This document shows positions 9,922 through 26,759 of a stretch of DNA of 36,391 bases, in pieces. Positions within the stretch are counted from its first letter, which is position 1, and every line of letters begins with the position of its first letter. The stretch lies in the sequence record NC_034620.1; one strand, 5' to 3'. The translations under genes were made by a program, and so were the position numbers. The notes beneath the pieces are model-generated. The model did no database searches and was not told where the DNA came from. It saw only the letters and a list, made by a program, of their open reading frames with translations.

Positions 9922-10001
9922 ATATACATAATATAATGTATATAGCTTTGGTTTTGAATTTTACGCCAATTTCATCAACTTATATACATTATATAGTATA
10001 T
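9922..10001 (+). promoter_or_regulatory. Two palindromic upstream sites of the capsid promoter
   Basis: ATATACAT-AATATA-ATGTATAT (9922-9943) and ATATACAT-TATA-TAGTATAT (9982-10001), both preceded by TCAACT, 60 bp apart. Confidence 0.7.
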
Positions 10002-10051
10002 ACGGCGTGAAAATTTATATTGTAGCAATTTTAAATATTAATTGACCAAAA

Positions 10052-10456
10052 ATGGCAAAAGGAAGAACACCAAGATCCTATAGTCAAAGGTATGCAAAAT
10101 GGTCAGCTAAATTTGCATCATTTTCAAATCCTACCGTAGCATCTACTATATTATCAAATGTTGCACCAGTTGCACAACAAAATTTCCAAACAAATGTTCC
10201 AAAATTTACTAGCGTAAATGAACAAGTTTCTAGCGTATTGTCAGAATATGGAATTACTGGTCCTAACAGAGCCATTTACCAAGGCTTTGGTTTGAAGGTA
10301 GCTAGAGCTTTAAATAGGTTGGGAGGAGGGCCAGCACTTGTTAACATGATAAATGGTTTGAAAGCATATTATATTTCAGCATTTAATGCTAATCCTACAG
10401 TATTAGATGCAGTTACTAATATAATTACTGGATCTCCAACTGGATATGTAAGCTAA
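10052..10456 (+). CDS. Major capsid protein (134 aa, SIRV ORF134/gp26)
   Basis: MAKGRTPRSYSQRYAKW...GPNRAIYQGFGLKVARALNR...GSPTGYVS; highly similar to recalled SIRV2 MCP. Confidence 0.98.
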   Translation: MAKGRTPRSYSQRYAKWSAKFASFSNPTVASTILSNVAPVAQQNFQTNVPKFTSVNEQVSSVLSEYGITGPNRAIYQGFGLKVARALNRLGGGPALVNMINGLKAYYISAFNANPTVLDAVTNIITGSPTGYVS

Positions 10457-10567
10457 AAAATTATAGAATATCTTTTAAGCTATTTTATTTTTTTATTTTT
10501 TCTTTTTCAGAACTTTAGTTCAAATTTAAAATTTTAAAAAAATCACTTTTAACTTTTTAACTTGAAA

Positions 10568-10738
10568 TTAATCATTATCATCAATTTTTGTTTCTATATA
10601 CTCATAATTTGTTTTACTTATTCTTTTACAATCACTAATTTTTACATTAGGATGATGTTTTTTCAAATGTGTAATCATAGCTTTTCTAGTTCTCGTTAAA
10701 TGTTGACAAATTGGACACTCGAACAAAAAGATGCCCAT
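10568..10738 (-). CDS. C2H2 zinc-finger protein (56 aa)
   Basis: CPICQ...HLKKHH; ATG 10738 fits the minus-strand TATA at 10762-10769 better than the track start at 10774. Confidence 0.82.
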   Translation of the reverse strand: MGIFLFECPICQHLTRTRKAMITHLKKHHPNVKISDCKRISKTNYEYIETKIDDND

Positions 10739-10742
10739 GATA

Positions 10743-10769
10743 TTTTTTAATGTCATGACATTTAAAAAA
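10743..10769. promoter_or_regulatory. Bidirectional promoter with palindromic core AATGTCATGACATT (10749-10762)
   Basis: TATA-like T6AA on each strand flanks the palindrome; ATGs at 10738 (-) and 10775 (+). Confidence 0.7.
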
Positions 10770-10774
10770 TTCAC

Positions 10775-11782
10775 ATGAAAACTACAATTTTGACCATGAA
10801 CTATTCCTCAATTCGTAATGTTTCAGAGGATATTGCACAAGTTTTACGAAAAAATGGAGAAATTGTAACAATTTCAACAAATCCATATTTAATTCCACAA
10901 TCTGATAAATTAATAATTTTTATGCCTTTCCATCCACCATCTCTAAATCCATATTTGTATGCATTTAGAGAATTTAAAGGTAAGAAGTATTTTTATACAA
11001 CTTGTGATGGTTTACCTAATACAAATATTGTAAATCAATATCTATTAGAAAATATAATATTTATTCCAAATTCAAAGTTTACAGCTCAAAATCTTCAAGA
11101 AGTTGGTCTTCAAACTGATCTTCCAGTTTTCCACGGTATAAATTTTGAAATTGTAGAAAAAGCTGAAAAATTAGCTATTCAATTAAAGCAAAAGCTGGAT
11201 AAAGATTTTCCAAATTCCATAAAATTTGGAATTGTAAGTGGTTTAACTAAAAGAAAAAATATGGATCTTATGATAAGAGTTTTCCAAGAAATAAATACTA
11301 AAATTCCAGAATTAGCCAAGAAAATCCATTTCTTTGTAATTTCTCATAAAGCATTTAAAGATTTTGAAGTTCCTGAAAATGTGCATTTTGTTTCAGAATT
11401 TGGTCTAAATCCAAGAGAATACATTTTTGCATTCTATCGCTCCATGGATTATATGATAGTTCCTTCTGGAACTGAGGGCTTTGGACTTCCAGTTTTAGAA
11501 AGCATGGCCATGGGAACGCCGGTCATTCATCAACTTATGGCACCGTTTGATGAATTTACCTCATGGCAGTGGAACCTTTTGATTAAATCTTCAGAAGTTG
11601 AAGAATATTATGATAAAACGCATGGGCAAAAATGGAAAATTCATAAATTTGATATTCATGACATGATAAATGCAATATTAATAGCTTCAGAACTTCAAGA
11701 TAGAGATGAGAGAAATAAAAATTTAAGAGAGTTAGCAAGAAAATATAATATAGAAAATTTATATGTCAGATTTTTAGAGTGA
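10775..11782 (+). CDS. GT4-family glycosyltransferase (SIRV ORF335 type)
   Basis: KRKN, EGFGLPVLESMAMGTPV signature; adjacent to the capsid gene as in SIRV2. Confidence 0.93.
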   Translation: MKTTILTMNYSSIRNVSEDIAQVLRKNGEIVTISTNPYLIPQSDKLIIFMPFHPPSLNPYLYAFREFKGKKYFYTTCDGLPNTNIVNQYLLENIIFIPNSKFTAQNLQEVGLQTDLPVFHGINFEIVEKAEKLAIQLKQKLDKDFPNSIKFGIVSGLTKRKNMDLMIRVFQEINTKIPELAKKIHFFVISHKAFKDFEVPENVHFVSEFGLNPREYIFAFYRSMDYMIVPSGTEGFGLPVLESMAMGTPVIHQLMAPFDEFTSWQWNLLIKSSEVEEYYDKTHGQKWKIHKFDIHDMINAILIASELQDRDERNKNLRELARKYNIENLYVRFLE

Positions 11783-11845
11783 CTTCAAGAGCTGATTAAT
11801 CGAAAAATTTATATGCTTTATATGATATATAATTATAGTGAGAGT

Positions 11846-11971
11846 ATGGAGGAAGTAATAATTGAATGTAAAGGTCTTACAAAGTTTCATGTAAAGAAAA
11901 AGAAAGGTATACAAATTAAAAATATAATAAATATGTGCAAAGATTATGGCTTGGAAGTGAAGGTGTATTAA
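11846..11971 (+). CDS. Small basic protein (41 aa; not in ORF track)
   Basis: MEEVIIECKGLTKFHVKKKKGIQIKNIINMCKDYGLEVKVY; TTTATAT promoter and GTGAG RBS upstream; ends 3 nt before the next ATG. Confidence 0.6.
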   Translation: MEEVIIECKGLTKFHVKKKKGIQIKNIINMCKDYGLEVKVY

Positions 11972-11974
11972 AAA

Positions 11975-12274
11975 ATGCCAAAATTCTATTATTGCTTTTT
12001 ATGTAAAACTACACTTGTTGGGAAAAAAGAATTCAAAAAACATGCACAGATACACTTTAAAAATAATAGATGTCCATATTGCAATATGAAAACTAAAAAT
12101 TTATCAATACATTTAGCATATTATCATTTACAATTTAGAAGAAAAGCAGTCTTATTAAGGGATTTAGCAATATTGTGCAAGGAAGCAAATACTACAAATA
12201 TTCTTCATGATAAAGATTTAAAAATTGATAATTACATCAAATTCAATATACAAAGAATGATGAAAAAGTTATAA
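11975..12274 (+). CDS. Double C2H2 zinc-finger protein (99 aa)
   Basis: CFLC...HAQIH and CPYC...HLAYYH. Confidence 0.85.
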   Translation: MPKFYYCFLCKTTLVGKKEFKKHAQIHFKNNRCPYCNMKTKNLSIHLAYYHLQFRRKAVLLRDLAILCKEANTTNILHDKDLKIDNYIKFNIQRMMKKL

Positions 12275-12350
12275 TTCTTTTTTTTAATACTATTTCTTTT
12301 GTCGAATGCTTTATATCTGTCATATTACATGTTTTTATTTACGTGAAAAA

Positions 12351-12551
12351 ATGGTAAACAAAATAGACATAATAAAAATTCACATATTATCTAAATTAGA
12401 ATATGAATTAATAAATGAAATAGTACAGAATAAAGAATTTGATGATAAAGACATAGTTGATATTTTAATGTTAATAAAAAATATTTTAAATGAAATTGAT
12501 ACGACTTTAACAATTTTAATAAGAACAACACAAAAAAATAACAATTTATAA
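12351..12551 (+). CDS. Hypothetical helical protein (66 aa)
   Basis: ORF track 12306..12551; ATG 12351 fits the TTTATAT-CTGTCAT promoter at 12310-12323. Confidence 0.75.
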   Translation: MVNKIDIIKIHILSKLEYELINEIVQNKEFDDKDIVDILMLIKNILNEIDTTLTILIRTTQKNNNL

Positions 12552-12567
12552 ACTTAGAGGTGTTAAA

Positions 12568-12891
12568 ATGGAGATTATAAAAGATTATGCTTTAGATAAT
12601 TTAGATATAATGATAATTTTATCTATAGGGAAAAAAGGAAATTCAAGTAAAAAAATTCATGAAACAGTTATAGAACTTTCGAAATTATTAAATATAAAAA
12701 TTGATTGTATTGATAATTATTGTGAAGATGTTGCAGAAAGGATAAATTCTCCATCAAGAATTCCATTTTGGATTAAGGTCAATTATAGATATAGATTGAA
12801 CAAATTAGGAAGAATAGCATATGATATAATAATAGAAAAACTAAAAGAGAAAAAAAGAGAAGATATGTTAAAAATATTAGAAAAACTTTAG
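12568..12891 (+). CDS. Hypothetical protein (107 aa), possible winged-helix fold
   Basis: GAGGTG RBS; C-terminal YRLNKLGRIAY resembles a wHTH wing/helix pattern (weak). Confidence 0.75.
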   Translation: MEIIKDYALDNLDIMIILSIGKKGNSSKKIHETVIELSKLLNIKIDCIDNYCEDVAERINSPSRIPFWIKVNYRYRLNKLGRIAYDIIIEKLKEKKREDMLKILEKL

Positions 12892-13109
12892 CTCAATTTC
12901 TTTTTTATTTCTTCAATTTGTTGTTTTAATTCATTCTGATTTATTTTCAACTCTTCAATTTCTATTTTTAAATTTTGTAGTTCTGAATTAACTATTTCTT
13001 TAACTGCGTCTCTTAATGCATTCTTAATTTTTAAATAAAGTTGAACAATTGCAAATAATGTAGTTACAAATGTTGAAATTATAGTTAAAACAAGTGTATA
13101 CTCACTCAT
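12888..13109 (-). CDS. Small TM plus coiled-coil protein (73 aa), conserved rudiviral type
   Basis: N-terminal hydrophobic helix and long heptad tail; overlaps the upstream gene by 8 nt. Confidence 0.8.
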   Translation of the reverse strand: MSEYTLVLTIISTFVTTLFAIVQLYLKIKNALRDAVKEIVNSELQNLKIEIEELKINQNELKQQIEEIKKKLS

Positions 13110-13470
13110 CTTTGATCCCTTGTATTTCTTCTTCTAGATTATCTAAATTTGTATTTTCATCATTTTTGAATTTCTGGTAAACAGAATCAACTTGTTTCGC
13201 GTAAGGTTGTGGATAAACTACGCGAAAATCTGCGATATCAATTCTACCAGTTTTAGGATCTTTTGCAATTAAAAACTGGAAATAAAAAGTAAATCCGGGG
13301 ATATATAAATCTACAATCATGGGCAATTCTGAATTTTTCAAAACAATAATTGAATGAGGTAAATATTTACTAAGGCCATAAATTTGACCTTGAAGTTCTA
13401 GTTCTCTAATTTTGTCTATCGCGATTCTCACGGGACCGAAAATATTCGAAAACTCATCTTTAATTTGCAT
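13102..13470 (-). CDS. Conserved rudiviral protein (122 aa, ORF110-like), probably late
   Basis: ORF with the late-type palindrome at 13521-13542. Confidence 0.82.
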   Translation of the reverse strand: MQIKDEFSNIFGPVRIAIDKIRELELQGQIYGLSKYLPHSIIVLKNSELPMIVDLYIPGFTFYFQFLIAKDPKTGRIDIADFRVVYPQPYAKQVDSVYQKFKNDENTNLDNLEEEIQGIKDE

Positions 13471-13619
13471 GTTTATTTATTTCATAAAACAAGAATAAAT
13501 AAACTCAAAGCAAATTTGCTATATACATAATATTATGAATATACATTTGTTGATGAGTACGTAAAGCATGAGCGAAAACTTTTTATATTTCGAAAACCAA
13601 TATTATCTTGGTGAAAGGA

Positions 13620-13973
13620 ATGAGAAGTCAAAAAACACAAAACAAAAGTCAAAACAAGTTACTTTTTTGTAAATTATGTCCTTTTGTAGCCGAATCTTAT
13701 GAAGAATTAGATCATCACATAAAAATGAGTCATTCTTATGATGATGATATTGAGGAAGAATTTACGCCAATTTTTGTAGATAAAAAAACCTATGAAAAAA
13801 TGTTATATAATGATTATTTAAGAATTTGTAAAGGAGGAGGATGTATTATTAGACCACAAATTGATTTTGAAGATGACAAAAATGAAGTAAGAAGATTGTA
13901 CAAAGAATATTGTGAAACTTGTGAATTAAAGAAATTATTACTTTCTGAATTAAAGCAAAATGGAAAAATGTAA
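13620..13973 (+). CDS. C2H2 zinc-finger protein with extra cysteines (117 aa)
   Basis: CKLCPF...HHIKMSH, further C at CKGGGC and CETC; GGTGA RBS before ATG 13620. Confidence 0.8.
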   Translation: MRSQKTQNKSQNKLLFCKLCPFVAESYEELDHHIKMSHSYDDDIEEEFTPIFVDKKTYEKMLYNDYLRICKGGGCIIRPQIDFEDDKNEVRRLYKEYCETCELKKLLLSELKQNGKM

Positions 13974-14099
13974 ATTTATTAATTTTTTATTTTTTTATCT
14001 CTAATTTTTTTCATCTTTGTATTAATATTTCAGCTTTTTGAAATAAATAAAGCAAAAGATTTTCATATTTCAAAAACATATATCATATCAGGGATAAAG

Positions 14100-14237
14100 A
14101 TGAGCGTAAAAGAAATTGAACAACAAATAATTAAGTTAGCACATGAGTTCAGTAAAAAGTATGGACAAGAAATACTAGAATTAAATGAATATGAATTAAC
14201 AGCATATATAAATTCAAAGTTAGATTATGAATTTTGA
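14100..14237 (+). CDS. Small protein (45 aa; not in ORF track)
   Basis: MSVKEIEQQIIKLAHEFSKKYGQEILELNEYELTAYINSKLDYEF; own AT-rich promoter region. Confidence 0.55.
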   Translation: MSVKEIEQQIIKLAHEFSKKYGQEILELNEYELTAYINSKLDYEF

Positions 14238-14287
14238 AAATATTTTAATTTTTATCAATTAAAATTGTTAATACTTTTATCTAAATC

Positions 14288-14446
14288 TTAAGTTAATATT
14301 TTTAAAATTTTTTTCTTATCAATCTTTTTATCAGTTTTGCAAGGTATATAAAATCCTTCATGTAAATCATACGGTTCACCATACCATAATTTTTTATTCA
14401 AATTACATGGCTCAATATTCCAATCTTTTTTCTTTTTAATTATCAT
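14288..14446 (-). CDS. Small basic protein (52 aa; not in ORF track), downstream of the virion protein gene
   Basis: MIIKKKKDWNIEPCNLNKKLWYGEPYDLHEGFYIPCKTDKKIDKKKILKILT; starts 13 nt after the upstream stop. Confidence 0.55.
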   Translation of the reverse strand: MIIKKKKDWNIEPCNLNKKLWYGEPYDLHEGFYIPCKTDKKIDKKKILKILT

Positions 14447-14459
14447 GTTTATCAATTCT

Positions 14460-15860
14460 TTATCTTTCAGCTATGTTTTTAAAGTTTTTGTAATAGAAGA
14501 TTGGCTTATATTGTTTGGCTTTTGCAGACTTTTGAGCTAACTTAAGCGAATTTTCAACTTTTGCTTGACCTTGTAATTTCTCTCCAAGTTGTTGAGCAAA
14601 TTGCAAATCAACATTTGAAATTCCATAAAATGACCACTTATTCTTCCAATAATTCAAAAATTCATTATAAGGAAGTGTTCTTTTTCCAGTTGAATAACTA
14701 TAATTTTGTTGATAAGGATATCTAGCAATTTCCAAAATTGCTGAAGCTACCATTTTAGCATACCATATATTAGAATATTTCTTGTTTACAATTCTTTGGA
14801 CTTGTAAAAATTGTTCATATGAAACTGCATAATTTTCAATTTCAGAACTGTAAGTTATGTTTATTCCTCCAGGAGATGGGTCATATAAATGTTGTTTAAA
14901 CAAACTTCCAAATATTGAAATTACAGTTTTATCAGCAGACAAAATGGAAACTAAATCTAATTGTGTGATATTGTTTGGATTAAATTCTGGAATTAGAATT
15001 GATAAATCTAAAGGCGAATAATCTAATATCATTCCGAAAACGTTAGCAAAATTTTGTAAAATCATACCGTTTTGTAACTGGACTTTATACTCTGGACTTT
15101 CTTCAATTTCTGGAGCTAAAACACATCTGTCTAACCATCCAACATCTAAAGCAAATCCGCTATTAATTATATCATTTAAGTTAGGAATAAATGAAACTAT
15201 GAATTTTGCTAAATCTGGAAGTTGATTATAGTTTAAATTTAAAGCATTCAATAAATCACCAACTCCAGTGTCTTGAATATTAGAAAGTGAATAATTATCA
15301 ACATTTGGAATTTGAGTATTTCCAATTCCTAAAGTTTGTAAGTTAATACTAATATTTGAATAACTTAAACTATTAAAATATTGTTCTATTTTTTCACATG
15401 CATTATTTCTGTTAATAATTGTATTTGCTGACTGAAAAACACTTAAGTCAAAATATGTCTCATCAAAAACTGCAGGCTGATATAAAATTGAACAAAGATT
15501 TACATAATTATCATAAAGTTGTGTAGATTTGTTTATAAAATCAAGACCAGAAGTTTGACCATAAATTCCACTTTGACCTAATTGTAGAAAACTAAATGAA
15601 TTTGTATTTGGATTAAATATTGACATTGCTAAATTGTTTAATGCGGAAAGTAAAGATGAAATAATTGTAGCATATGCAATTCCATAATTAGTATTTATAC
15701 CTTTAGGAACTGAAATGTTCTCAAGCGGTGTTGGTAAAACTGATGAAACTCCAGCGTTAAACATTTGCGAAAAAGCGGGAAAAGTATTTCTATTTAGTAC
15801 TTTTTGATAAAGATGATATTTCATTTGTGCAATTGATCTTTGTCCTACTTTCCTACCCAT
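14460..15860 (-). CDS. Minor virion protein (SIRV2 ORF488 type, about 466 aa)
   Basis: Size, position and MGRKVGQRSIAQMKYHLYQKVLN start; ATG 15860 preferred over TTG 15884. Confidence 0.85.
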   Translation of the reverse strand: MGRKVGQRSIAQMKYHLYQKVLNRNTFPAFSQMFNAGVSSVLPTPLENISVPKGINTNYGIAYATIISSLLSALNNLAMSIFNPNTNSFSFLQLGQSGIYGQTSGLDFINKSTQLYDNYVNLCSILYQPAVFDETYFDLSVFQSANTIINRNNACEKIEQYFNSLSYSNISINLQTLGIGNTQIPNVDNYSLSNIQDTGVGDLLNALNLNYNQLPDLAKFIVSFIPNLNDIINSGFALDVGWLDRCVLAPEIEESPEYKVQLQNGMILQNFANVFGMILDYSPLDLSILIPEFNPNNITQLDLVSILSADKTVISIFGSLFKQHLYDPSPGGINITYSSEIENYAVSYEQFLQVQRIVNKKYSNIWYAKMVASAILEIARYPYQQNYSYSTGKRTLPYNEFLNYWKNKWSFYGISNVDLQFAQQLGEKLQGQAKVENSLKLAQKSAKAKQYKPIFYYKNFKNIAER

Positions 15861-15994
15861 AATTATTATATTTGTAAAAGTCAAAATAAAAACTTAATTC
15901 TAATATACAATATAATGTATATCAGTTTTACTCTTTGATCTCATCATATTCAATTCATAAAATATATATTTGTCATATTTTGAGTTACAAATAT

Positions 15995-16729: not shown

Positions 16730-16801
16730 ATATCATCAATATAAAAATTTTTATATGACAAATTTAAACATATATATGTCATAATTTTTAAGTTTAATTT
16801 G

Positions 16802-17185
16802 ATGAATTTTAGACAATCTGGAAAATATTATGAATATAAGACACTTAATTATCTTGAAAAACATGGATACAAAGCTATAAGAATTCCAGTTTCTGGAACT
16901 GGAAAACAGCCAATTCCAGATATTATAGCAACTAAGGATAATACAATTTTTCCAATTGAAGTTAAATCAACTTCACAAAATTATGTTGTAGTTGATAATT
17001 TTCAAATTGATAAATTGTTTAAGTTCTGTGAGATATTCAATTTTTGTAATTGTAAACCGTTAATACTAGTTCATTATAAAAAATATAAAAATGTCATAAT
17101 ATATAATTTGAGTCAAGATGTCAGAACAAAAGAAAAAATCAAATTTACCTTCAGAGCTAACAGCAAAACTGTATTTAGCACTTGA
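16802..17185 (+). CDS. hjc: Holliday junction resolvase (Hjc family)
   Basis: GKYYE...GYKAIRIPVSG...PDIIA...IEVKS PD-(D/E)XK motifs. Confidence 0.95.
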   Translation: MNFRQSGKYYEYKTLNYLEKHGYKAIRIPVSGTGKQPIPDIIATKDNTIFPIEVKSTSQNYVVVDNFQIDKLFKFCEIFNFCNCKPLILVHYKKYKNVIIYNLSQDVRTKEKIKFTFRANSKTVFST

Positions 17186-17327
17186 CGATTTAACTATGGC
17201 ATTAGCTACTTGTGATAGTGAAGAAATTAGAAAAAGTGAAGTTTTTCAAAAAGCTCTAGAAGTTGTAAAAATTGTTAAAGAAATGAGAAATGCTAAAATA
17301 AAATCTGATGAAGAAGAAAAAGCTTAA
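17118..17327 (+). CDS. Conserved rudiviral protein (69 aa, ORF69 type)
   Basis: TAKLYLALDDLTMALATCD...KALEVVKIVKEM; overlaps hjc by 68 nt. Confidence 0.8.
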   Translation: MSEQKKKSNLPSELTAKLYLALDDLTMALATCDSEEIRKSEVFQKALEVVKIVKEMRNAKIKSDEEEKA

Positions 17328-17741: not shown

Positions 17742-20700
17742 ATGAGTTTCTTATTAAATCTTGGAGATTTAGGTACATTTTTTTCAGATGAGCTAACAGC
17801 ATTAGAGAATTTTGCAAATTTCTTAAGCTCTGATTTTATAAACTTTTTTAGTGCAGTAGTTAATGATATTGAAAATGTTGTAAGTTTCATAGGTCAGGCA
17901 ATTAGTGATATTCCAACTTTTATGCAAAAAATTGCTAACAATTTCTTGACGATTTTGCAAAACTTTGTACAAACTGCAATTCCAGTAGTTTCAGGATTTT
18001 TAACATTTCTTGAACAACAAATTATAAATGTATTTCAAGATTTGTCTTCTTTAGCTTCTACATTTATAAATGATGCATATTCATTTTTACAAGGTGTTGT
18101 AAATGCATTTGCAAATTTAATAAGTACAATAGTTCAAGATTTTCTAAATAATTTTGGTCAAAATATGAAACATATTAGTTCTGCAATTTCTCAAGTTACT
18201 CAATTTTTAACTCCATTTATCGCTCCAGTCACTTTAGGAAAATTTTTGCCAGCAATAATAGATAAATTAGCTGAAATTTTGCCAGAAGTTGAAATTGATT
18301 TAGCGCCAGTTGGCTTAGGCGGAAAAATTCCAATTAACTTTGGAGAAATTGTAAAAGCGTTTGCTGAAACTTCAGTTGACTTTTTAAATGAAGTAAGAGT
18401 AGAAATACAAACTACGCTTAAGGAGTTTATAAAAGAGCCATTTATTTCAGATTTTAAAATTACTGCGAGAGAAATATTTAATGAAATTGGTCTTGGAGAT
18501 TTACCATTTGCAGATCCTCCATTTAGATTAATTGCAAATTGGGTCGGTTCAAGATCATTTTCTGAAATTAAAGACCATCTTAAAGAAACAATTCTATTGA
18601 CTGGATTTCCAGCATGGTTTACTGATGCTTATCTAGAATCTCCAGTTGATGATTTTATACCAAGAAATCCGTTATTTAGACCAGTAAATATAAGAGATGT
18701 AATTTTAGCTTCACAATATGGAATTTTAGACTTTAGTGCAGTTTCTCAATATGCAGAAAATAATTTAATAACTCCAAAAACTGCAAAATTAATGTATCAA
18801 AATGAGACTGCGAGACTTTTACAAAGAGCAGTTGAAGAGGGAATTAGACAATTTGTAGTTACTCCTGAAAAAGCTTATCAAGAAATAATACAAAATGTTA
18901 ATTTAGCTGGTAAAGATTTATATCTAAAAGTTTTCTCTCTTGAGTACAATTATTCAGTTCAAAGAATTGTTAGACAGTTTTTAAGATCACTTTTATCAAG
19001 AGCTTTAACTAATTTTGGAAGACCATACATTGATCTAAAATTCCTAGAATCAACAGTTCAAAAATTATTTAAAGAACTAAATTATCCTGAAGAAGTTCAA
19101 AATGTTTTCAACATAATGATTGAACAATCTCAAATAGTTTATACTAATCAATTACTTTTGACACAATTAGAACAACTTACCAGATTAGGAATATTTGACG
19201 AAAAGAAAGTAAAAGCAGAGTTAAAAGCTAATAACTTTAATGAACAGATAGCACTTACAATTTTGAATTATGAACTTCAATATGTACAATTACAATATAT
19301 CTTGAAACAATACCAATTCATGTTACAAAATTATATTATTAGTACAAAAGATGCAGAAAATCAATTAAAGAAATTAGGCTTTGATTCATCTATAATTTCT
19401 GAGATAATTTTTGAATATCAAACAGCTCCATTAACAAAATATCAAATTAGCCAAATTGAAAGTTTGGCTAGAAAAGGATATTTATCAGTTGATGAAATTA
19501 AAAAACAATTACATTCATTAGGCATAATTAAGGAATTTGAAGACATATTTATCAATTACACAAGTCAAGAAATTCAAATATCAACAACTTTAAGTATTGT
19601 AAAAGAACAATTAAGAAACTTCCTAATAGATTCGAAAACTGTAGAAAATGAATTAAAAGCATTAAAAATTAATGATTATTTAATAAATGAGATAATTCAA
19701 GAAGAATATAACATAAATATATCTAAATTACAATTATCATATTTAGAAACTTTAGCTAAGAATTTATATTATGATCAAAATCAATTAGCCGGAGAATTAG
19801 CAAAAATTCTAAAAGATAAAACTGCAATAGATCTTTATACTCAAAAATTCTATTATGAATATGTATTTCCAAAAATTGTCAGTTATCACGTTAGTTTAGC
19901 AAGACATGGAATTTCCTCAAATATTTCAAACTTGCCAAAAGAAATTGTAGATTATGAAATTAATCCAGAAATCCAAATTTTCCAACTTACAACAGAATTA
20001 GAATATATAAAATCATTATTAAAAGATTTACAAATAACTCCAACAAATGCTGAAAACGAGTTAATAAAATTAGGAATGCAAAAAGATTTAGCTAATTTAT
20101 TTGTGCAAACTTATATTCCAACACTTTACAGTTTACATACAATTATTGGAAATATTATAGAAGGTCAACTTTACAAAGTTGGAAAAATTCCAATTAATTT
20201 AGGAAATGCAGAAACGCAATTAAGACAATTAGGAATTCCAGAAAACCAAATAAAAATAATTATTGAACAATATGAATCTTCATTTGGCTTAGAAATTTGG
20301 AGAAAATACTTACCTTCACTTTCTCAAATTGAAACTGCAATAAAATATAACTTTCCAATTAACCAATTAGTTGAATATTCATTTATACCATCTGAATTTC
20401 TTAACTTATATTCTAATTTATATCAATATGAATTAATTGGACAATATGTACAATCTTTGAGAAATGAATATATTCAACTTCTCACTTATGGAGTTCAAAA
20501 TATACAATTAGAGAATTTGCTAAAACAATATGGAATAAATCAAGTCCTATTAGAAGTTTTCAAATTATCAGCACAAATTAGAAAATTATTAATGGCTTAT
20601 CAAGAACTTTACATCACTCCATCTAAAGCACTCACAATTAGCGAATATATTAGCAATCCAAATCAACTTTTACAAAAAGTATTTTCCGAATTTCAAGTAC

Positions 20701-20918
20701 CAACAGATTTACAAAATACTTACTTAGAATATGCAAGAAATAGGAGACTTAGAACGTACGTAAATGAAATAATTTCAACAATCAATTTGTTATTTGAAAG
20801 ACAAAAAATAGATCTAAATACGGCTCAACAATACTTACAACAATTAAAACAATATGGTTTAACAAATGAAGAAATTCAATTAATCTTACTTAACTGGCAA
20901 TTAAGAAGTAACTATTAA
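17742..20918 (+). CDS. Large virion terminal-fibre protein (SIRV2 ORF1070/gp38 type, 1058 aa)
   Basis: Largest ORF; N-terminal amphipathic/coiled region, repeated helical units; conserved position after hjc. Confidence 0.92.
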   Translation: MSFLLNLGDLGTFFSDELTALENFANFLSSDFINFFSAVVNDIENVVSFIGQAISDIPTFMQKIANNFLTILQNFVQTAIPVVSGFLTFLEQQIINVFQDLSSLASTFINDAYSFLQGVVNAFANLISTIVQDFLNNFGQNMKHISSAISQVTQFLTPFIAPVTLGKFLPAIIDKLAEILPEVEIDLAPVGLGGKIPINFGEIVKAFAETSVDFLNEVRVEIQTTLKEFIKEPFISDFKITAREIFNEIGLGDLPFADPPFRLIANWVGSRSFSEIKDHLKETILLTGFPAWFTDAYLESPVDDFIPRNPLFRPVNIRDVILASQYGILDFSAVSQYAENNLITPKTAKLMYQNETARLLQRAVEEGIRQFVVTPEKAYQEIIQNVNLAGKDLYLKVFSLEYNYSVQRIVRQFLRSLLSRALTNFGRPYIDLKFLESTVQKLFKELNYPEEVQNVFNIMIEQSQIVYTNQLLLTQLEQLTRLGIFDEKKVKAELKANNFNEQIALTILNYELQYVQLQYILKQYQFMLQNYIISTKDAENQLKKLGFDSSIISEIIFEYQTAPLTKYQISQIESLARKGYLSVDEIKKQLHSLGIIKEFEDIFINYTSQEIQISTTLSIVKEQLRNFLIDSKTVENELKALKINDYLINEIIQEEYNINISKLQLSYLETLAKNLYYDQNQLAGELAKILKDKTAIDLYTQKFYYEYVFPKIVSYHVSLARHGISSNISNLPKEIVDYEINPEIQIFQLTTELEYIKSLLKDLQITPTNAENELIKLGMQKDLANLFVQTYIPTLYSLHTIIGNIIEGQLYKVGKIPINLGNAETQLRQLGIPENQIKIIIEQYESSFGLEIWRKYLPSLSQIETAIKYNFPINQLVEYSFIPSEFLNLYSNLYQYELIGQYVQSLRNEYIQLLTYGVQNIQLENLLKQYGINQVLLEVFKLSAQIRKLLMAYQELYITPSKALTISEYISNPNQLLQKVFSEFQVPTDLQNTYLEYARNRRLRTYVNEIISTINLLFERQKIDLNTAQQYLQQLKQYGLTNEEIQLILLNWQLRSNY

Positions 20919-20961
20919 ACAACTAAATAAATAAATTTGTCACATTTTTAAACTAGAAATT

Positions 20962-21777
20962 ATGAGCGTTAATTTATGTCATTATGAGGCGGAAAATATA
21001 AGTTATAAAGATTTAGAAAATCTTCAAGGTATGATATATTATGAGATAAAATATGATGGAACACATATTTGTTTAAAGTATGAAAATGAACTAAAAATTA
21101 ATACTAGAAAAGATATACCTCATGATAAAACATTTCAGAATTTGTTTTATCAAGTTCCAAATATTGATGAAATTATAAAATATATAAAAGAACATAACAA
21201 TTATATAATACATGGGGAACTTATACATAAAAAGACATCAGCATTACAGATTCACAAAAATGAAACTCCAGAATTTATAATTTATGATGTTTTTGATAAA
21301 GAAAATAATAGATATTTAAATCCATTTGAAGTTGATAGTGAAATTTACGAATGGTATCCAGAAATTTGTTTAGATTTAGATGATTTACTTGATATTATAA
21401 CTAAAGAAAAACTTGAGGGCTTAGTAGCTAAAATCTATAATCCGAAATTTGCAAATTGTGAAGAAGGCAGAAATTTTAACATGTGTCTTTTCAAATACAA
21501 ACCATATTTTTCAACTTTAGGAGTAATATTTAAACCAATTAGGAGAGAAATTGATGTTAGACAATTAGCGTTTCTTCTCGGCGAAATAGATAATGATTTA
21601 AAGAATAATAAAGATGAATGGTATAGAAATCATCCAGAACTTTACAAGTTCTTTATCGAAAATAAAGATAAAATAATACAGATACTACAAAACGAAAACT
21701 TCATATTACAAATTGAAGAAAATACACATTTAGACATTAAGAAAATTAAAGAATATATTACAAATTTCAAAAGATAA
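20962..21777 (+). CDS. ATP-dependent polynucleotide ligase-family nucleotidyltransferase, RNA-ligase-like (271 aa)
   Basis: Motif I EIKYDGT, Ia TRK, III IIHGEL, IIIa FIIYDVF, IV LEGLVAK, V LFKYK; no OB domain. Confidence 0.85.
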   Translation: MSVNLCHYEAENISYKDLENLQGMIYYEIKYDGTHICLKYENELKINTRKDIPHDKTFQNLFYQVPNIDEIIKYIKEHNNYIIHGELIHKKTSALQIHKNETPEFIIYDVFDKENNRYLNPFEVDSEIYEWYPEICLDLDDLLDIITKEKLEGLVAKIYNPKFANCEEGRNFNMCLFKYKPYFSTLGVIFKPIRREIDVRQLAFLLGEIDNDLKNNKDEWYRNHPELYKFFIENKDKIIQILQNENFILQIEENTHLDIKKIKEYITNFKR

Positions 21778-21796
21778 CAACATTTAGACCAAGCCA

Positions 21797-21816
21797 TATA
21801 CATAATATTATGTATA
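21797..21816. promoter_or_regulatory. Perfect 20-bp palindrome TATACATAATATTATGTATA upstream of the 566-aa virion gene
   Basis: Read directly; same family as sites at 9922, 9982, 13521, 15903 and 26670. Confidence 0.75.
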
Positions 21817-21858
21817 AGCTATGTGTGTTTATTTCTGTCAAGTTAATAATTTTTTCAT

Positions 21859-23559
21859 ATGAGCTTACCATACAAAGTACGTTTTAAGTTACCGTTAGAA
21901 TTTCTAACGTTACAAGACTGGAATAATTTTGTGCAAAATTTGTTATTTATAAATCAATATGGTTCAGCAAAGCTATTACAATATTATCAAAATGGGAATT
22001 TTCAAAATCTAAATGATGTAATTGCTGACTATTTATTTGTTTCAGCTTTAAAAGTAGCTGGATATAATGTTCTTCATAATTTATCACAACCACAAGCTTA
22101 TACATTTGGGGAAGGAAAACAACAGCCATTTGAAAGCATGGCAAATAAACCAATAATTCAACTGAAGCCTGTAATATTTCCAATTCTAAATTTTCAGATA
22201 CAATTATCTAAAGTTAGTAAACAATTGCAATTATTAATTCCTAAACTAACAAGTAAAATTATAACTCCAAACCAAATTGCTGGAACACAATTCCAATTTT
22301 CTGGGAGTGCAAATTTACAACAAATAACTTCACAATATTTAGATCCATCATATTTACAAACTTGGAGAGAAATAATAATACAAAATTTAGGCAGTTCTGC
22401 AGTTCAAATTAATAATTCTATCTATTTAATGCCTAAAAATTGTTTAAAGATAACTGTAAGTTCACCAAGTGAAATTCAATTAACCGCACAAACTCCAACT
22501 TTGCTAAGTGAAGAAATTGAATTTGTTGGAATTCCAATAACATTTTATACAATTACGATAACAAATTCACAGAGTGATCCAACTCCATCTCCATTCCAAC
22601 AATTACTTCAACTTAATCTTTCTTCAATTTTATCAAGTTCTAGTCAATTATTAAATTTAGAATTTTGTTTAGATTCACAATGTAATACTCCACTTTACGC
22701 ATGGATTGAAAGTTATACTTCTGATTTATCAAGTGTTTATATTTGGATTAATTTGCCAACTTCAATACCAGCAAATTCATCAATTACAATTTATATGTTT
22801 ATAAGAAATTCAATTCAATATCCTTATACTGGAATGAGACCAGATTTATCCGCGAGTTATGCACAATATGATAACGGAAAAAATATATTTTTAATTTATT
22901 TTAATGGCAATGAACCATTATCTAATTTTAATAATCAAGGAAATTCATTAACTCAAATATCTACAACCGGACCGTTAGGAAATACAATAAATGCAATTTA
23001 TATAAGTGGTTATAATTCACATTTTGGATTTGTATATACTGCTAAGTATATATCAAATCAAGCAGTAATTGCAGAATCATCAGTGATAGATCTAGGAAAT
23101 CAAACAGGTGGATTAAATGCAGATAATGGATTTTCTTCTATAGTTGATAGTACTTCAATTGGTAATTTAAATGCAATAAGTGTGGATATGGGGTATTCTG
23201 GTTCTTATTTTTCTAATGATTATTTTATAAGTGGAACTCAAACTTCTGATTTAAACCCAGCAGGAACTGCAGTATCACAGTGGCTTTATGCATGGGTCGT
23301 ATATTCTGGAACATCAAGTACTTCATGGTATGGATGTATAGCACCTCAACTTTATAGCTCAACTAATGGTTATTGTGGTACAGTTGGCAATAATCCATTT
23401 TCTAGTTCTTCTCAATTATATTTAGGTATAATTGGTAGTGTAAATTCTAGTTATCAGTGGCAAACTGCATGGAATTTTATGAGGTTAAGAGCTTATCCTC
23501 CAAATAACGTAATGCCTTCAAATTCTCAACCACAAAAGACAATAGTTCTAGTCACGTGA
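21859..23559 (+). CDS. Minor virion protein (SIRV2 ORF564 type) with DUF2341-like beta domain
   Basis: TITITNSQSDPTP...PLYAWIESY...IWINLPTSIPANSSITIYM pattern; S/T/N/G-rich C-terminal half. Confidence 0.87.
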   Translation: MSLPYKVRFKLPLEFLTLQDWNNFVQNLLFINQYGSAKLLQYYQNGNFQNLNDVIADYLFVSALKVAGYNVLHNLSQPQAYTFGEGKQQPFESMANKPIIQLKPVIFPILNFQIQLSKVSKQLQLLIPKLTSKIITPNQIAGTQFQFSGSANLQQITSQYLDPSYLQTWREIIIQNLGSSAVQINNSIYLMPKNCLKITVSSPSEIQLTAQTPTLLSEEIEFVGIPITFYTITITNSQSDPTPSPFQQLLQLNLSSILSSSSQLLNLEFCLDSQCNTPLYAWIESYTSDLSSVYIWINLPTSIPANSSITIYMFIRNSIQYPYTGMRPDLSASYAQYDNGKNIFLIYFNGNEPLSNFNNQGNSLTQISTTGPLGNTINAIYISGYNSHFGFVYTAKYISNQAVIAESSVIDLGNQTGGLNADNGFSSIVDSTSIGNLNAISVDMGYSGSYFSNDYFISGTQTSDLNPAGTAVSQWLYAWVVYSGTSSTSWYGCIAPQLYSSTNGYCGTVGNNPFSSSSQLYLGIIGSVNSSYQWQTAWNFMRLRAYPPNNVMPSNSQPQKTIVLVT

Positions 23560-23567
23560 GGTCAAAC

Positions 23568-23732
23568 ATGATGTTCTTTAATTCAAAATTAAGTTCATTC
23601 GGCTTTAATTCAGAATTTAAAAATCTCCAGATTTGCCTCATACCGAACAAGTGCAATTTTGGAATTGATAATATAAAAATTATGAATATAGTTTTAAATC
23701 ATTTATTCAAAATTAAGCACGTAGTGATGTAA
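23568..23732 (+). CDS. Small protein (54 aa; not in ORF track) inside the virion gene operon
   Basis: GAGGT RBS at 23558-23562; fills the gap exactly and stops 2 nt before ATG 23735. Confidence 0.6.
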   Translation: MMFFNSKLSSFGFNSEFKNLQICLIPNKCNFGIDNIKIMNIVLNHLFKIKHVVM

Positions 23733-23734
23733 AA

Positions 23735-25270
23735 ATGTCTTCAACTTACTGCGTTCAATTACCAGAAAATCTTTTATTATTATCTATGACTACAGTAAAT
23801 CCTATAAACTTTACATCTTTGCAATTTTCATTAAGCGTAAATTCGCTAGTTATATTTCTATTCTCAAAATATCCTTTTAATTCTGGTTATTACAATAATT
23901 TTTGTATAAATCAAGATGAGTTTGGATTTGCACAAGTTGGACAAACTTTCAATATAGATCTATCAAATTATCAAGGATATTATATGCTAATTTTAATTTA
24001 TCCACAAGGAATTAATTTAAAGAGTTCTAAAAGTTGTGTCTCGATTCAAGGTTTAACTATGACTTTTCAGAATACAACAATTTCACCAATTACAAGTGAA
24101 ACTGTAATTAATAATTTTGATGGTCAAGAAGAAACCGGATTTTGTACATGTTATGATGGTCAAAGTCATGTAATAGAAATTCTATGTAATAATTCAAATT
24201 ATGTTTCTGCTATTTTATTAAATAATTTAAATAATCAATTACTAATAATGACTTGTCAAGGATTTGTATATGAAAATAATACAACTGTAGGATTTATAAC
24301 GCCAAGTACATGTGGTACTTTTGGTTCATATTTAACAGCAGAAATAACATTTATTGCAAATCAATCAGTTATAGATTTTCTAAATAATAATAATATCTCT
24401 TATAATATTTTATCATCTACTGAATGTCAACCAACTTATAAATTATTACCATGTACTTTACCATGTAAATCGTTTTACCAAATTACAAAATTATTATCTC
24501 CACCAACTAAATATTCTATAATATCTTCAAAATTATGGAATGAAATTGTACAAGACCTATATCTAACTTATAGTGTATTTAAATATATTAATTATTTAAC
24601 ACAATATGCATATTTAGACTATATATATCCTACAATTTTAGACTTTTATAATTTTTATGAAAACTTTCAACCATATCCATTTACTCAATTATTGTATGCA
24701 CAAAAAGGAATTCCATTAACTGTAAACGATTTTAACAAATTAATAGATGCAATTGTAAAATTAGCAAATGAAAATGATATAAAATTGAAAAAAGGACTTT
24801 CTTATGTTCAGCGTGATCAAGTCGTAAGAGCTTCACAATTTGCAAATATAGTTTATAATGTTAATCAATTTCTAACTTTTAATTATAATCAATATTTTCT
24901 ATTAGATTGTAATGGATCAATTTTCTCGAATTTATTGAATAAACAAAATGCATTTTTAAATGTCATAATTAATAATTTAGTAACTTCACTTAATATTCCT
25001 TCAAACGTTTATATTAAAAACTTATTAATATATACTTTAAATCAAACTATTTATAATTATGGTGTAATAGATAAATTAATAATTAATATTAATAACGGCG
25101 AAATTTATCTTAATGGAAATTCATTTATAAATTTTCTACTTATAACTGACAATAATAATAATATTTATGTAAATGATAATTCAGTAATAAACAATTTAAT
25201 TTGTATTAGTAATACTGGCACTATAAATATCTCATCAAATGCAATAATTAAAAATAATCAATGTGCTTAA
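23735..25270 (+). CDS. Putative virion/adhesion protein (511 aa) with Cys-rich N-terminal half and C-terminal beta-solenoid repeats
   Basis: Downstream of the ORF564-type gene; about 20-aa N/I-rich repeats at the C-terminus. Confidence 0.8.
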   Translation: MSSTYCVQLPENLLLLSMTTVNPINFTSLQFSLSVNSLVIFLFSKYPFNSGYYNNFCINQDEFGFAQVGQTFNIDLSNYQGYYMLILIYPQGINLKSSKSCVSIQGLTMTFQNTTISPITSETVINNFDGQEETGFCTCYDGQSHVIEILCNNSNYVSAILLNNLNNQLLIMTCQGFVYENNTTVGFITPSTCGTFGSYLTAEITFIANQSVIDFLNNNNISYNILSSTECQPTYKLLPCTLPCKSFYQITKLLSPPTKYSIISSKLWNEIVQDLYLTYSVFKYINYLTQYAYLDYIYPTILDFYNFYENFQPYPFTQLLYAQKGIPLTVNDFNKLIDAIVKLANENDIKLKKGLSYVQRDQVVRASQFANIVYNVNQFLTFNYNQYFLLDCNGSIFSNLLNKQNAFLNVIINNLVTSLNIPSNVYIKNLLIYTLNQTIYNYGVIDKLIININNGEIYLNGNSFINFLLITDNNNNIYVNDNSVINNLICISNTGTINISSNAIIKNNQCA

Positions 25271-25339
25271 TATAGAACTTTTACATATTCGGTTTTAATT
25301 TTAAATTAAAAAGTTCTAAATTTGACCTCATAATGCTCT

Positions 25340-25822
25340 TCATAATTTGCAAAATATAAATTCTTTATTATCATCAGTTATAAAAGTTAGAACTGTGCCG
25401 TATAATTTTCGCATTAAATCAAAACGGTTCTCTGTCCAATCATGAATAGCTATACAATATTGTTTGTATTTTTGTAATTGAGAAAAATCAAGTTTACTTT
25501 CGCATCCCTCACAATCCATAACTAAAATATCAGCATTTGGATATTCTTTTCCAGTCCATTCGCCGTAAACTTCAACTTTATCACATATTTGAAATTCTTT
25601 ACAAACTTTTTCTTTAAATCTTTTATTCAGCTCATCACTTTTTTCATAACCAATTATTTTCTTTGCACCTTTAAGAAGAAAATACAAAGCAGAACTTCCA
25701 CAATCATTTCCAATTATTATAATTGTTTTATTTTCAACTTGCAATTTTCCATATGCATAATCAAACTCATGCCAATAACAACACTCTAATTTACAAAAAT
25801 AATCTTTATAATTTATACTCAT
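25340..25822 (-). CDS. SAM-dependent methyltransferase (FkbM-like, SIRV ORF158 type)
   Basis: Motif I variant IIIIGNDCGSSALYF, IIGYEK, DILVMDCEGCE. Confidence 0.85.
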   Translation of the reverse strand: MSINYKDYFCKLECCYWHEFDYAYGKLQVENKTIIIIGNDCGSSALYFLLKGAKKIIGYEKSDELNKRFKEKVCKEFQICDKVEVYGEWTGKEYPNADILVMDCEGCESKLDFSQLQKYKQYCIAIHDWTENRFDLMRKLYGTVLTFITDDNKEFIFCKL

Positions 25823-25824
25823 GA

Positions 25825-26628
25825 TTAAATGACCTCAAACAAAGCATAAACTTTAGCTTTCCCGGTAGCCCATGCGTAAACATTTGCAGGATTATTTACA
25901 TGTATTTCCAAACTATCATTTTGTAGAATTGGAAAATTATTATATAATTGATTTCCAATATAAACTATATAATTACTAAGATTTTGTAAAATTATTCTTA
26001 CAGTTTCTATAGATGGACCGGAATAAAGTGGACTTGGAGTTGTAGAAACATCAAGTTGAAGACCTTCAATAGTCGGCGGTGATAAATACAAACTTAATTT
26101 ATTTATTGTATTAGCTAAACCAACTGTAGCTAAATATACATAGTCAAGTACATATTCTATAGAATTCGCAATAACATAAATTGCATTTTGTAATGAAATT
26201 CCTAATTTTTTAGAAATTGAATTTATCAAAATATAAAATGACTCATAAAAGTTATCAAAATTTTGTGTAAGTGTATTACTAATTTGATTAGGTAATTTGA
26301 TAATTGAGTAATATAATTGTTCATTTGAATATAAAATTAAATTTATTTGTTGTTGAGCAGTTGAAATAAATCCAGCGATATAAATTGGATCTAGTTCTGT
26401 TAAAACTGGTTGTCCAGCTATATAAATTTCATCATAGAAAAATCCAGAACTAGCATTTATTGAACCTGGAATTGTTAAATTTCCATTTTTTAGAATTGAA
26501 GTAACTGCATTTCCACCAGTTTCATAAAGTTGAATTAGCAAAAGTGATGCAGTGTTCCACATGGAAGAAGTAAGTCTTTGAAACGGTGAAGCTAACAAAC
26601 TTGAAATTGATGTATATGTAATGCTCAT
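25825..26628 (-). CDS. Conserved rudiviral protein (267 aa, ORF269 type)
   Basis: Size and position; late-type palindrome at 26670-26691. Confidence 0.85.
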   Translation of the reverse strand: MSITYTSISSLLASPFQRLTSSMWNTASLLLIQLYETGGNAVTSILKNGNLTIPGSINASSGFFYDEIYIAGQPVLTELDPIYIAGFISTAQQQINLILYSNEQLYYSIIKLPNQISNTLTQNFDNFYESFYILINSISKKLGISLQNAIYVIANSIEYVLDYVYLATVGLANTINKLSLYLSPPTIEGLQLDVSTTPSPLYSGPSIETVRIILQNLSNYIVYIGNQLYNNFPILQNDSLEIHVNNPANVYAWATGKAKVYALFEVI

Positions 26629-26759
26629 ATGTTTATATACTTAAATTGTAGTAAAAATAAACTCATAACTTATATATCATATTATGTATATCACTTGATC
26701 TAATTGTCCTCGTTACGAATTAACAATATTTTAATTTGTCATGAACTGGAAAAATAATT

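Follow-up and report, generated by a model that had tools for sequence, protein, structure and literature searches.

A conserved 22-bp palindrome marks virion-gene and other promoters of rudiviruses and is a probable site of a dimeric regulator

We identified six copies of a 22-bp palindromic element, upstream of five promoters, in the genome of Sulfolobus islandicus rod-shaped virus 9 (SIRV9; KY744228/NC_034620), a rudivirus from Yellowstone (Rudiviridae, Usarudivirus) with a G+C content of 25%. The window analysed here is this entire genome of 36,391 bp, with the same length and coordinates and full identity over the 13 kb compared. The palindrome is probably the cis-regulatory site of a sequence-specific dimeric regulator, an activator of virion genes that is itself probably viral, and we put the probability of this reading at roughly 0.6. 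Judged from the sequence, the element would define a rudiviral promoter class comprising the promoters of the coat protein, ORF110/84c, ORF488, ORF564 and ORF269/methyltransferase in SIRV9, together with those of ORF399/310 and ORF335 in Icelandic relatives. In kind, it appears to be an ordinary transcription-factor site. To our knowledge, the rudiviral regulatory elements described so far are only the early arm promoters linked to Aca8, the action of SvtR on ORF1070, and a vaguely defined Sta1 site. Our literature search turned up no prior description of the palindrome beyond the Sta1 paper (PMC1635249).

Results

Six palindromes stand out from the rest of the genome

The original prediction had placed six sites upstream of virion and other genes, and all six are present where it put them (Table 1). 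The distances that it gave from the edge of each proximal site to the start codon are also right (51 nt for ORF24 and ORF32, 43 nt for ORF36, 42 nt for ORF42 and ORF45), as is the near-identity of its two shorter copies, which agree at 19 of 20 positions in gene orientation. These 20-mers lie at 9982-10001 (ATATACATTATATAGTATAT, edge 51 nt from the ORF24 ATG) and at 15903-15922 (ATATACAATATAATGTATAT, edge 43 nt from the ORF36 ATG).

The perfect palindrome at 9922-9943 has one exact match in SIRV9 and none in 100 shuffled genomes. With up to two mismatches allowed in the 16 specified positions, there are eight matches in SIRV9, six of them intergenic, against a dinucleotide-shuffle expectation of 0.27 per genome and 0.06 for intergenic sequence, which totals 6.9 kb (no more than one match in any of 500 shuffles). 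To avoid circularity, we built a position weight matrix (PWM) from 29 sites of other rudiviruses, all with sequences absent from SIRV9. The top six positions of SIRV9 by this independent PWM are exactly these six sites; the 95th percentile of the null maximum is 14.7, and the next-best candidates score 12 or less. All six sites fall within 9.9-26.7 kb, and no PWM match above 9.2 occurs in the genome arms, before position 4300 or after 31000, which bears out the earlier remark that the arm promoters lack the site. A PWM scan had been proposed as a check, with random genome-wide matches as the outcome that would count against the site; since the six sites rank first and none lies in the arms, that refutation fails. 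Chance is excluded as the origin of the element in SIRV9.

Two near-matches to the shorter form lie within the coding sequences of ORF45 (26134-26153) and ORF50 (30496-30515). They have G/C-containing centres, are present also at the orthologous SIRV5 positions, and are probably codon-constrained chance matches.

The palindrome is conserved at orthologous promoters

Palindromes precede the same genes in SIRV5 (USA) and in SIRV1, SIRV2 and SIRV3 (Iceland). At the gene for the major capsid protein (MCP), an orthologous site with a six-base centre (N6) stands 49 nt from the ATG in SIRV1, SIRV2, SIRV3, SIRV5 and metagenomic rudiviruses, and the distal MCP site recurs at 109 nt in 22 related loci. 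The ORF110 site lies 51 nt from the start in 16 loci, where no other block of the aligned promoters is as well conserved; the ORF564 site lies at 42 nt in SIRV1, SIRV2, SIRV3, SIRV5 and one metagenomic locus; and the ORF269 site lies at 42 nt in the SIRV5 orthologue and at 51 nt in SIRV1. For ORF488 the distance ranges from 26 to 43 nt with the start codon called. Icelandic viruses carry a further palindrome 42 nt before ORF399 (ORF399/ORF310), and SIRV1 has one 60 nt before the ORF335 glycosyltransferase gene.

We pooled nine isolate genomes with 35 non-redundant IMG/VR loci fetched via the coat protein (44 sequences, 691 kb). In this set the pattern ATATWCAT-N6-ATGWATAT, with up to two mismatches, occurs 106 times outside open reading frames (ORFs) with an SIRV homologue and three times inside them. 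Pairwise identity reaches 0.86 across the ORF110 palindrome, compared with 0.72 at the TATA box of that promoter and 0.49-0.61 in its flanks; at the MCP promoter the proximal site has 0.78 and the distal site 0.65, with 0.53 in the DNA that separates the two and 0.36 in the DNA upstream of both. By this comparison, the palindrome is as conserved as the TATA box. Weaker versions occur at orthologous promoters of SRV (Azores), SBRV1 (Japan) and ARV2, and none was found in ARV1 or SMRV1. Viruses from Iceland, the USA, the Azores and Japan keep the positions at orthologous genes despite divergent flanks, which indicates selection on the 22-mer rather than recent copying.

Outside the rudiviruses, the lipothrixvirus SIFV shares the host species and lacks the site (best PWM score 7.2). 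The exact palindrome ATATACATWATATWATGTATAT occurs 12 times in 596 Gb of one-genome-per-species prokaryotic genomes, and none of these matches is in the Sulfolobales. A pattern scan of IMG/VR for the exact palindrome returned, among the matches listed, mostly unrelated AT-rich viruses.

Some metagenomic lineages use ATATTCAT..ATGAATAT in place of ATATACAT..ATGTATAT, with both halves changed and at several promoters per genome. In some metagenomic rudiviruses, palindromes also stand upstream of the single-stranded DNA-binding gene (gp17 type), at 103 nt, and of the gp20-type operon, at 75 nt (L158 at 4212 and 6726; L164 at 2832 and 5346; L165 at 6602). By our reading, only half-site-like sequence is kept in the gp17 promoter of SIRV1 and in the gp20 promoter of SIRV2.

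Anatomy of the element

The anatomy was derived from 65 distinct rudiviral sites oriented by gene, which give the 22-bp consensus ATATWCAT-WATATW-ATGWATAT. The distal half, ATATWCAT, is almost invariant, and the proximal half is looser, with the forms ATGTATAT, ATGTATAA, ATGTATTA and ATATATAT. The centre had been described as a free six-base spacer, which it is not: it reads WATATW in at least 61 of the 65 sites (>93%), though the centre was not used in site selection. The only G/C pairs are C6, found in 60 of 65 sites, and G17, found in 51. Being 11 bp apart, they lie on the same helix face, which fits a dimeric protein. The geometry is that of a 5-N6-5 dyad, TACAT-N6-ATGTA, as used by many dimeric DNA-binding proteins.

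The division into N6 sites and a separate class with a four-base spacer (N4) did not hold up. The orthologous sites in SIRV5 are ordinary N6 sites (the counterpart of the ORF36 site reads TAATACATAATATAATGTATAT), and the total length down to the B recognition element (BRE) is unchanged. For these reasons the two N4 sites, which are borderline by PWM alone, are best read as degenerate N6 sites whose proximal half has slipped or decayed within the TA repeat.

The element is about 90% A+T and TATA-like. A hairpin or cruciform function was considered and rejected: the hairpins that the palindrome can form are weak (-2 to -5.5 kcal/mol at 37 C), too weak for a virus whose host grows near 75-80 C.

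Position relative to the core promoter

TATA-box placements were inferred from sequence (Table 1). Boxes of the G-TTTATTT type are present in four of the five promoters, in agreement with the weak TATA boxes first noted there, and in four of the five the BRE does not look purine-rich. The palindrome sits, as predicted, just upstream of the BRE/TATA position. Its gap to the TATA box falls into two clusters, 8-10 bp (19 sites, abutting the BRE) and 15-20 bp (18 sites), which differ by roughly one helical turn. The shared order is thus palindrome, 8-10 bp, and a TTTATTT-type TATA box often followed by GTC, with 15-20 bp as the alternative gap. A dyad directly upstream of the BRE/TATA and helically phased with it has the layout of an archaeal upstream activator site. 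At ORF42, the TATA box starts 31 nt from the ATG, so the transcript would be almost leaderless; the palindrome would then occupy roughly -59 to -38, immediately ahead of the BRE.

The longer distance from site to ATG at the MCP gene is due to a conserved 5' leader and not to a shifted site. This leader, ATTGACCAAAAATG at 10038-10054, is almost invariant in about 30 distinct rudiviral MCP promoters, which suggests a conserved untranslated leader or a translation signal for the most abundant virion protein. American viruses have two sites in the MCP promoter, 60 bp apart. Within one genome, sites resemble each other even in their flanks, with aactc on the 5' side and gAGTTATG on the 3' side.

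We also noted a second promoter type, ATATAAA(A/T)ATGTCATAAT, in which the TATA box is followed directly by GTC about 25-35 nt before the ATG. It is found at 8316-8340 and upstream of ORF14, ORF11 and ORF37, with equivalents in SIRV1, SIRV2 and SIRV3, and serves replication and other non-virion genes (orthologues of gp15, gp17, gp20, gp23 and gp34). It is probably the 'virus-specific consensus element' of PMC1635249.

Candidate factors encoded by the virus

SIRV9 encodes three ribbon-helix-helix (RHH) proteins. Viruses from Iceland and America that keep the element have these DNA-binding proteins in common: the gp21-type RHH protein (ORF19), an SvtR-like RHH protein (ORF18), the gp27 C2H2 protein (ORF25) and Aca8 (ORF7). 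We regard ORF19 as the leading viral candidate, offered only as a lead, and ORF25 as a possible lead after it.

In gel shifts, SIRV2 gp21 was reported to bind the promoters of gp17 and gp20, and its synthesis begins at 30 min and peaks at 1 h (PMC9976892); the gp17 and gp20 operons are those that carry an upstream palindrome in some lineages. In L146, L149 and L170, which belong to the ATATTCAT..ATGAATAT lineages, the gp21-like protein starts MKTITIKI, versus MRVITVKI or MMKIITFKI elsewhere, and the SvtR-like protein is the same as in viruses of the ATATACAT type. The box bound by SIRV2 gp21 and by the host cell-cycle regulator aCcr1, also an RHH protein (PMC9976892, PMC9976878), resembles the palindrome in being a short AT-rich motif with a GTAT core, read by an RHH protein that every rudivirus encodes. 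It differs in being AGTATTA or a 9-bp GTA..TAC palindrome that lies after the TATA box and before the ATG, whereas the SIRV9 element has 22 bp with everted halves (TAC-N12-GTA), contains no GTATTA and lies 8-20 bp upstream of the TATA box. The Icelandic proximal half-site reads TGTATTA, which contains the aCcr1 seed, and does so in two of the four SIRV2 sites.

It is conceivable, though we think it unlikely, that the gp21-type protein is the factor itself, both arresting host division by repression of cdvA through aCcr1 boxes and activating virion genes through the 22-bp dyad. If so, one middle-phase regulator would couple host takeover to particle production, and gp21 would be a rare RHH activator acting from an upstream site, with a specificity that co-evolves with its sites across rudivirus lineages.

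The winged helix-turn-helix (HTH) protein at 4028 (ORF9), put forward earlier as a possible factor, is a poor candidate, as are ORF15 (RHH_3) and ORF33 (C2H2): none of the three has a BLASTP match among SIRV2 proteins (E <= 1e-5), and SIRV2 keeps the element without detectable homologues. ORF15 (7279-7551, minus strand) has a C-terminal RHH_3 domain, and ORF33 (13620-13973, plus strand) has an N-terminal C2H2 finger and is divergent from ORF32 across the palindrome at 13521. Searches of Pfam, PHROGs and the PDB with small conserved proteins gave no HTH candidate, and in the set of proteins conserved with the element we detected neither an Lrp/AsnC-type nor any other HTH protein.

The gp24 orthologue ORF23 (9492-9803, minus strand), divergent from the MCP gene, has homologues in the SIRVs, SRV and SBRV1, where the element is present, and none in ARV1 or SMRV1 (BLASTP E <= 1e-5). 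Its model (predicted local distance difference test, pLDDT, 84) has the order alpha-beta-beta-alpha-beta-beta with invariant C9 and C91. It was rejected as an obvious DNA binder, having no HTH in the predicted fold and no significant PDB match. The gp24/ORF23 promoter (about 9850-9868) has its own repeats of ATATACTATAT, also seen in SIRV1 (L002, 10990-11025); in SRV (L006, about 6480-6510) these repeats form the perfect palindrome ATATACTATAATATATAGTATAT, and in SIRV2 a stretch of the gp24 promoter, AGTATACT, resembles an aCcr1 box (GTA..TAC).

Genes and other features

SIRV9 genes were named by BLAST against SIRV2 proteins (BLASTP E <= 1e-5). The features under discussion are collected in Table 1.

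Table 1. Palindromes, TATA boxes, genes behind the sites and candidate factors in SIRV9, by position in the window
Feature	Position	Strand	Sequence or identity	Context	PWM score
Distal MCP (ORF24) palindrome	9922..9943		ATATACATAATATAATGTATAT; perfect, ATATACAT-AATATA-ATGTATAT	109 nt to ATG	28.4
Proximal MCP palindrome	9982..10003	+	22-mer ATATACATTATATAGTATATAC; distal half conserved, proximal half degenerate	Abuts BRE (cgtgaaa)	15.2
ORF32 palindrome	13521..13542	-	ATATACATAATATTATGAATAT; in gene orientation ATATTCATAATATTATGTATAT	51 nt to ATG at 13470	27.3
ORF36 palindrome	15901..15922	-	22-mer, in gene orientation ATATACATTATATTGTATATTA	Edge 41 nt to ATG at 15860	13.9
ORF42 palindrome	21796..21817	+	ATATACATAATATTATGTATAA	42 nt to ATG	26.8
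ORF45 palindrome	26670..26691	-	TTATATATCATATTATGTATAT; in gene orientation ATATACATAATATGATATATAA	42 nt to ATG at 26628	20.8
MCP TATA box	10012..10019	+	ATTTATAT	8 nt downstream of proximal palindrome; block gaCGTGaaaATTTAT conserved across loci	
ORF32 TATA box	13494..13503	-	TTTATTTATT	17 nt from palindrome	
ORF36 TATA box	15883..15892	-	TTTTTATTTT, then GAC	10 nt from palindrome	
ORF42 TATA box	21828..21839	+	TTTATTT with downstream TGTC element	10 nt from palindrome	
ORF45 TATA box	26652..26661	-	TTTATTTTTA	8 nt from palindrome	
ORF24	10052..10456	+	Major capsid protein (MCP); SIRV2 gp26/ORF134 orthologue, 88% identity		
ORF32-ORF31	12888..13470	-	gp32/ORF110 and gp31/ORF84c orthologues; core rudiviral genes of unknown function	Downstream of 13521 palindrome	
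ORF36	14460..15860	-	SIRV2 gp33/ORF488 orthologue; minor virion protein type	Virion/structural annotation in SIRV3 and SRV	
ORF42	21859..23559	+	SIRV2 gp39/ORF564 orthologue	Structural-protein annotation in SRV	
ORF45-ORF44	25340..26628	-	gp42/ORF269 orthologue and S-adenosylmethionine (SAM)-dependent methyltransferase	Downstream of 26670 palindrome	
ORF19	8513..8659	+	Ribbon-helix-helix (RHH_1, E = 8e-8); SIRV2 gp21 orthologue	Viral aCcr1 homologue	
ORF25	10568..10756	-	Single C2H2 zinc finger; gp27/ORF55 orthologue; annotated 'C2H2-finger transcriptional regulator' in SIRV3	Beside MCP gene	

Two further observations concern the genome at large. An intact ORF of 127 codons at 16802-17185 (plus strand) has 72% identity to the SIRV2 Holliday junction resolvase (gp35/ORF121), and the RefSeq SIRV9 record has no coding sequence annotated between 16729 and 17118. 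The 22-mer ATGTTAATAATAATATATATAA occurs at 213-234 and, inverted, at 35260-35281, near both genome ends, as expected of the terminal inverted repeats of a linear rudiviral genome.

Discussion

An upstream site with a probably viral factor and probable positive control

We propose that a dimer, or a dimer of dimers, would read the two half-sites of the palindrome, with C6 and G17 on one face of the helix. From its upstream position the bound protein may help TBP and TFB to assemble on the core promoters, four of the five with a TTTATTT TATA box, so that virion-building genes would come on as a group, later than the early (arm) genes. Host Sta1 (Sul14a) is probably also present on this AT-rich element, as its 2006 footprint suggests, without giving sequence specificity. 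Three features make positive control the more likely sign of regulation: where the site lies, the helical phasing between the two gap classes, and the unremarkable BRE/TATA sequences at four of the five promoters. A factor encoded by the virus seems more likely than one from the host, given that ATATACATWATATWATGTATAT is not found in the Sulfolobales, that SIFV has no site, that half-sites shift by lineage, and that the gp21-like RHH protein co-varies with them.

Archaeal activators such as Ptr2, of the Lrp family, bind dyad sites immediately upstream of the BRE/TATA of weak core promoters and recruit TBP. The rudiviral palindromes resemble such sites in abutting the BRE/TATA and in sometimes occurring twice in one promoter, as at the MCP gene. 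They differ in that the Ptr2 system depends on an Lrp-family factor, of which we found none among the proteins conserved with the palindrome, and in that activation here is deduced from the layout. The early-gene regulatory sequence of these viruses (PMC11065993) is likewise a conserved promoter-linked element that marks a temporal class. It precedes small anti-defence genes of the arms, with strong BRE/TATA sequences, and is thought to be repressed by a winged HTH protein; the palindrome has no arm sites, and the two are different elements.

Several points weigh against the proposal of a virion-gene activator. The terms 'late' and 'activator' come from gene content and position. ORF1070 (ORF40), a virion gene, and ORF17, the pyramid/lysis gene, have no palindrome in SIRV9, and the MCP promoter has a good BRE/TATA and yet two palindromes. 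The proximal half is often degenerate, which may mean that a monomer or an asymmetric complex binds. In the infected-cell pull-downs with P134 and P399, only Sta1 was seen on silver-stained gels (PMC1635249), which argues against an abundant and tightly binding viral factor under those conditions. The co-variation between the gp21-like protein and the half-sites is confounded by shared ancestry and few lineages, and positions 5 and 18 perhaps simply tolerate W, so we take it as a lead and not a result. Lastly, neither the aCcr1 motif AGTATTA, nor its seed GTATTA, nor the 9-bp A(T/G)G(A)TA(G)A(T/G)TACN occurs within 25 nt of any SIRV9 site.

The original prediction, of a 'late and virion gene' regulon under a dimeric activator, thus stands in part. 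Three of the site-bearing gene types (MCP, ORF488 and ORF564) carry virion-protein annotation in relatives, and the dyad and its position upstream of the BRE fit a dimeric activator. The genes with the site overlap the virion genes but are not the virion or late regulon as such: a virion gene and a lysis gene lack it, and it precedes ORF110/ORF84c and ORF269/methyltransferase, of unknown or non-structural function, and in Icelandic viruses ORF399/ORF310 and ORF335. Among the factors that the prediction named, the winged HTH protein is a poor choice.

Sta1 and the published P134 footprint

A dimer of Sta1 (Sul14a, Lrs14 family) could be the cognate factor, aiding TBP/TFB recruitment at good Sta1 sites that the virus has evolved; we consider this rather unlikely. 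In the original study (Kessler et al. 2006, PMC1635249), Sta1 was pulled from extracts by the SIRV1 promoters P56, P134 and P399, of which genes 134 and 399 had been chosen since they 'could be under transcriptional control'. P134 and P399 both bear the palindrome. The study also reports that Sta1 binds as a dimer, that it stimulated P134 in vitro, and that its footprint on P134 covers the core promoter and a region of about 20 bp some 30 nt upstream; an imperfect inverted repeat and an activating effect were noted by the authors (PMC1635249). The Reg2 oligonucleotide, from the core-promoter footprint region, corresponds to SIRV1 11102-11131. In the P134 stretch the Sta1 consensus ATNT-N8-WNAT occurs only at 11060-75, 11072-87 and 11111-26, and the first two of these, upstream of the core, overlap the SIRV1 palindrome at 11072-93. 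It is thus very probable that the 2006 study already saw part of the element, as a region protected by Sta1. The P56 fragment has a single consensus match, ATATACTTATATACAT, presumably the authors' putative site, and this contains a palindrome half-site.

The fit of Sta1 had been judged poor in the original prediction, which under-rated the link, given the overlap at P134. The motifs essential for binding at sso0777, the one mapped host site of Sta1 (TTATT, CANGNA, TTATT; PMC2175319), have no match anywhere in SIRV9 even with flexible spacing. Four of the six SIRV9 sites (9922, 13521, 21796 and 26670) do contain a Sta1 consensus match, but the consensus matches 396 times on the two SIRV9 strands (5.6 matches per kb in SIRV1) and so has no discriminating power. 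Sta1 is now described as a chromatin protein, abundant and essential, whose DNA binding is non-specific and favours AT (PMC12847825), and its dissociation constant for a P134 oligonucleotide was 10 uM (PMC1635249). Such a preference explains the protection of a 90% A+T element but not the invariant symmetric C6/G17 or the lineage-wide half-site shifts, and a host factor sits poorly with the lack of exact palindromes in the Sulfolobales and of sites in SIFV. No stimulation was reported for P399, where the palindrome is strong. The Sta1 region of P134, some 20 bp of protected DNA about 30 nt upstream of the core promoter, is like our element in virus family, promoter and placement. It is unlike it in that the published site is 16 bp long and highly degenerate rather than a 22-bp dyad and was never reported as common to a gene set or conserved across rudiviruses.

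A possible repressor operator or a possible site without a factor

The palindrome might also be the operator of a repressor, for instance of an early or middle RHH protein that nucleates on it, spreads over the BRE/TATA and keeps virion genes off until it is titrated by replication. We hold this to be unlikely, though most characterised archaeal viral regulators repress, the site abuts the BRE, and SIRV9 is well supplied with RHH proteins. In SIRV1, SvtR (gp08) represses ORF1070, and the proposed mode is spreading onto the promoter from a target some 80 nt upstream of its TATA box (PMC5569661). The SvtR operators, like the palindrome, are imperfect inverted repeats, read by a rudiviral RHH protein that controls a virion gene. 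The SvtR consensus ATnnTTCAAnAnnnnnAAAATG, however, has no match in SIRV9, the target promoter of SvtR, that of ORF1070, has no palindrome there, and SvtR-like proteins do not vary with half-site type. The palindromes lie upstream of the BRE/TATA and not over them, gap classes one helical turn apart point to face-specific contacts of an activator rather than to spreading, and four of the five core promoters look intrinsically weak. That no dedicated factor exists at all is most improbable. On this account the element would be a flexible AT tract of the UP type, an extra landing pad for TBP, a cruciform or hairpin, or a promoter cassette copied from gene to gene, as its A+T richness, its TATA-like sequence and the likeness of sites and flanks within a genome could suggest. 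Against it, the most informative positions are the two symmetric G/C pairs, the hairpins are weak for growth at such temperatures, orthologous positions are kept across four regions despite diverged flanks, and no divergent gene start that a reverse TATA box could serve is present within about 100 nt of either MCP site or of the ORF42 site.

Conclusion

In conclusion, the temporal control of gene expression in archaeal viruses is poorly understood, and a sharp 22-bp element would give a concrete and testable means of studying middle-to-late gene control. Conserved across continents, the element marks the promoter of the coat protein together with four to seven others. The 2006 footprint of Sta1 can now be re-read with this element in mind, given that Sta1 is a general chromatin protein. 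Potentially, the palindrome may be used to fish for its factor, to build inducible or infection-responsive promoters for Sulfolobus, to predict co-regulated genes in new rudiviruses, and to test how an activator contacts TBP and TFB.

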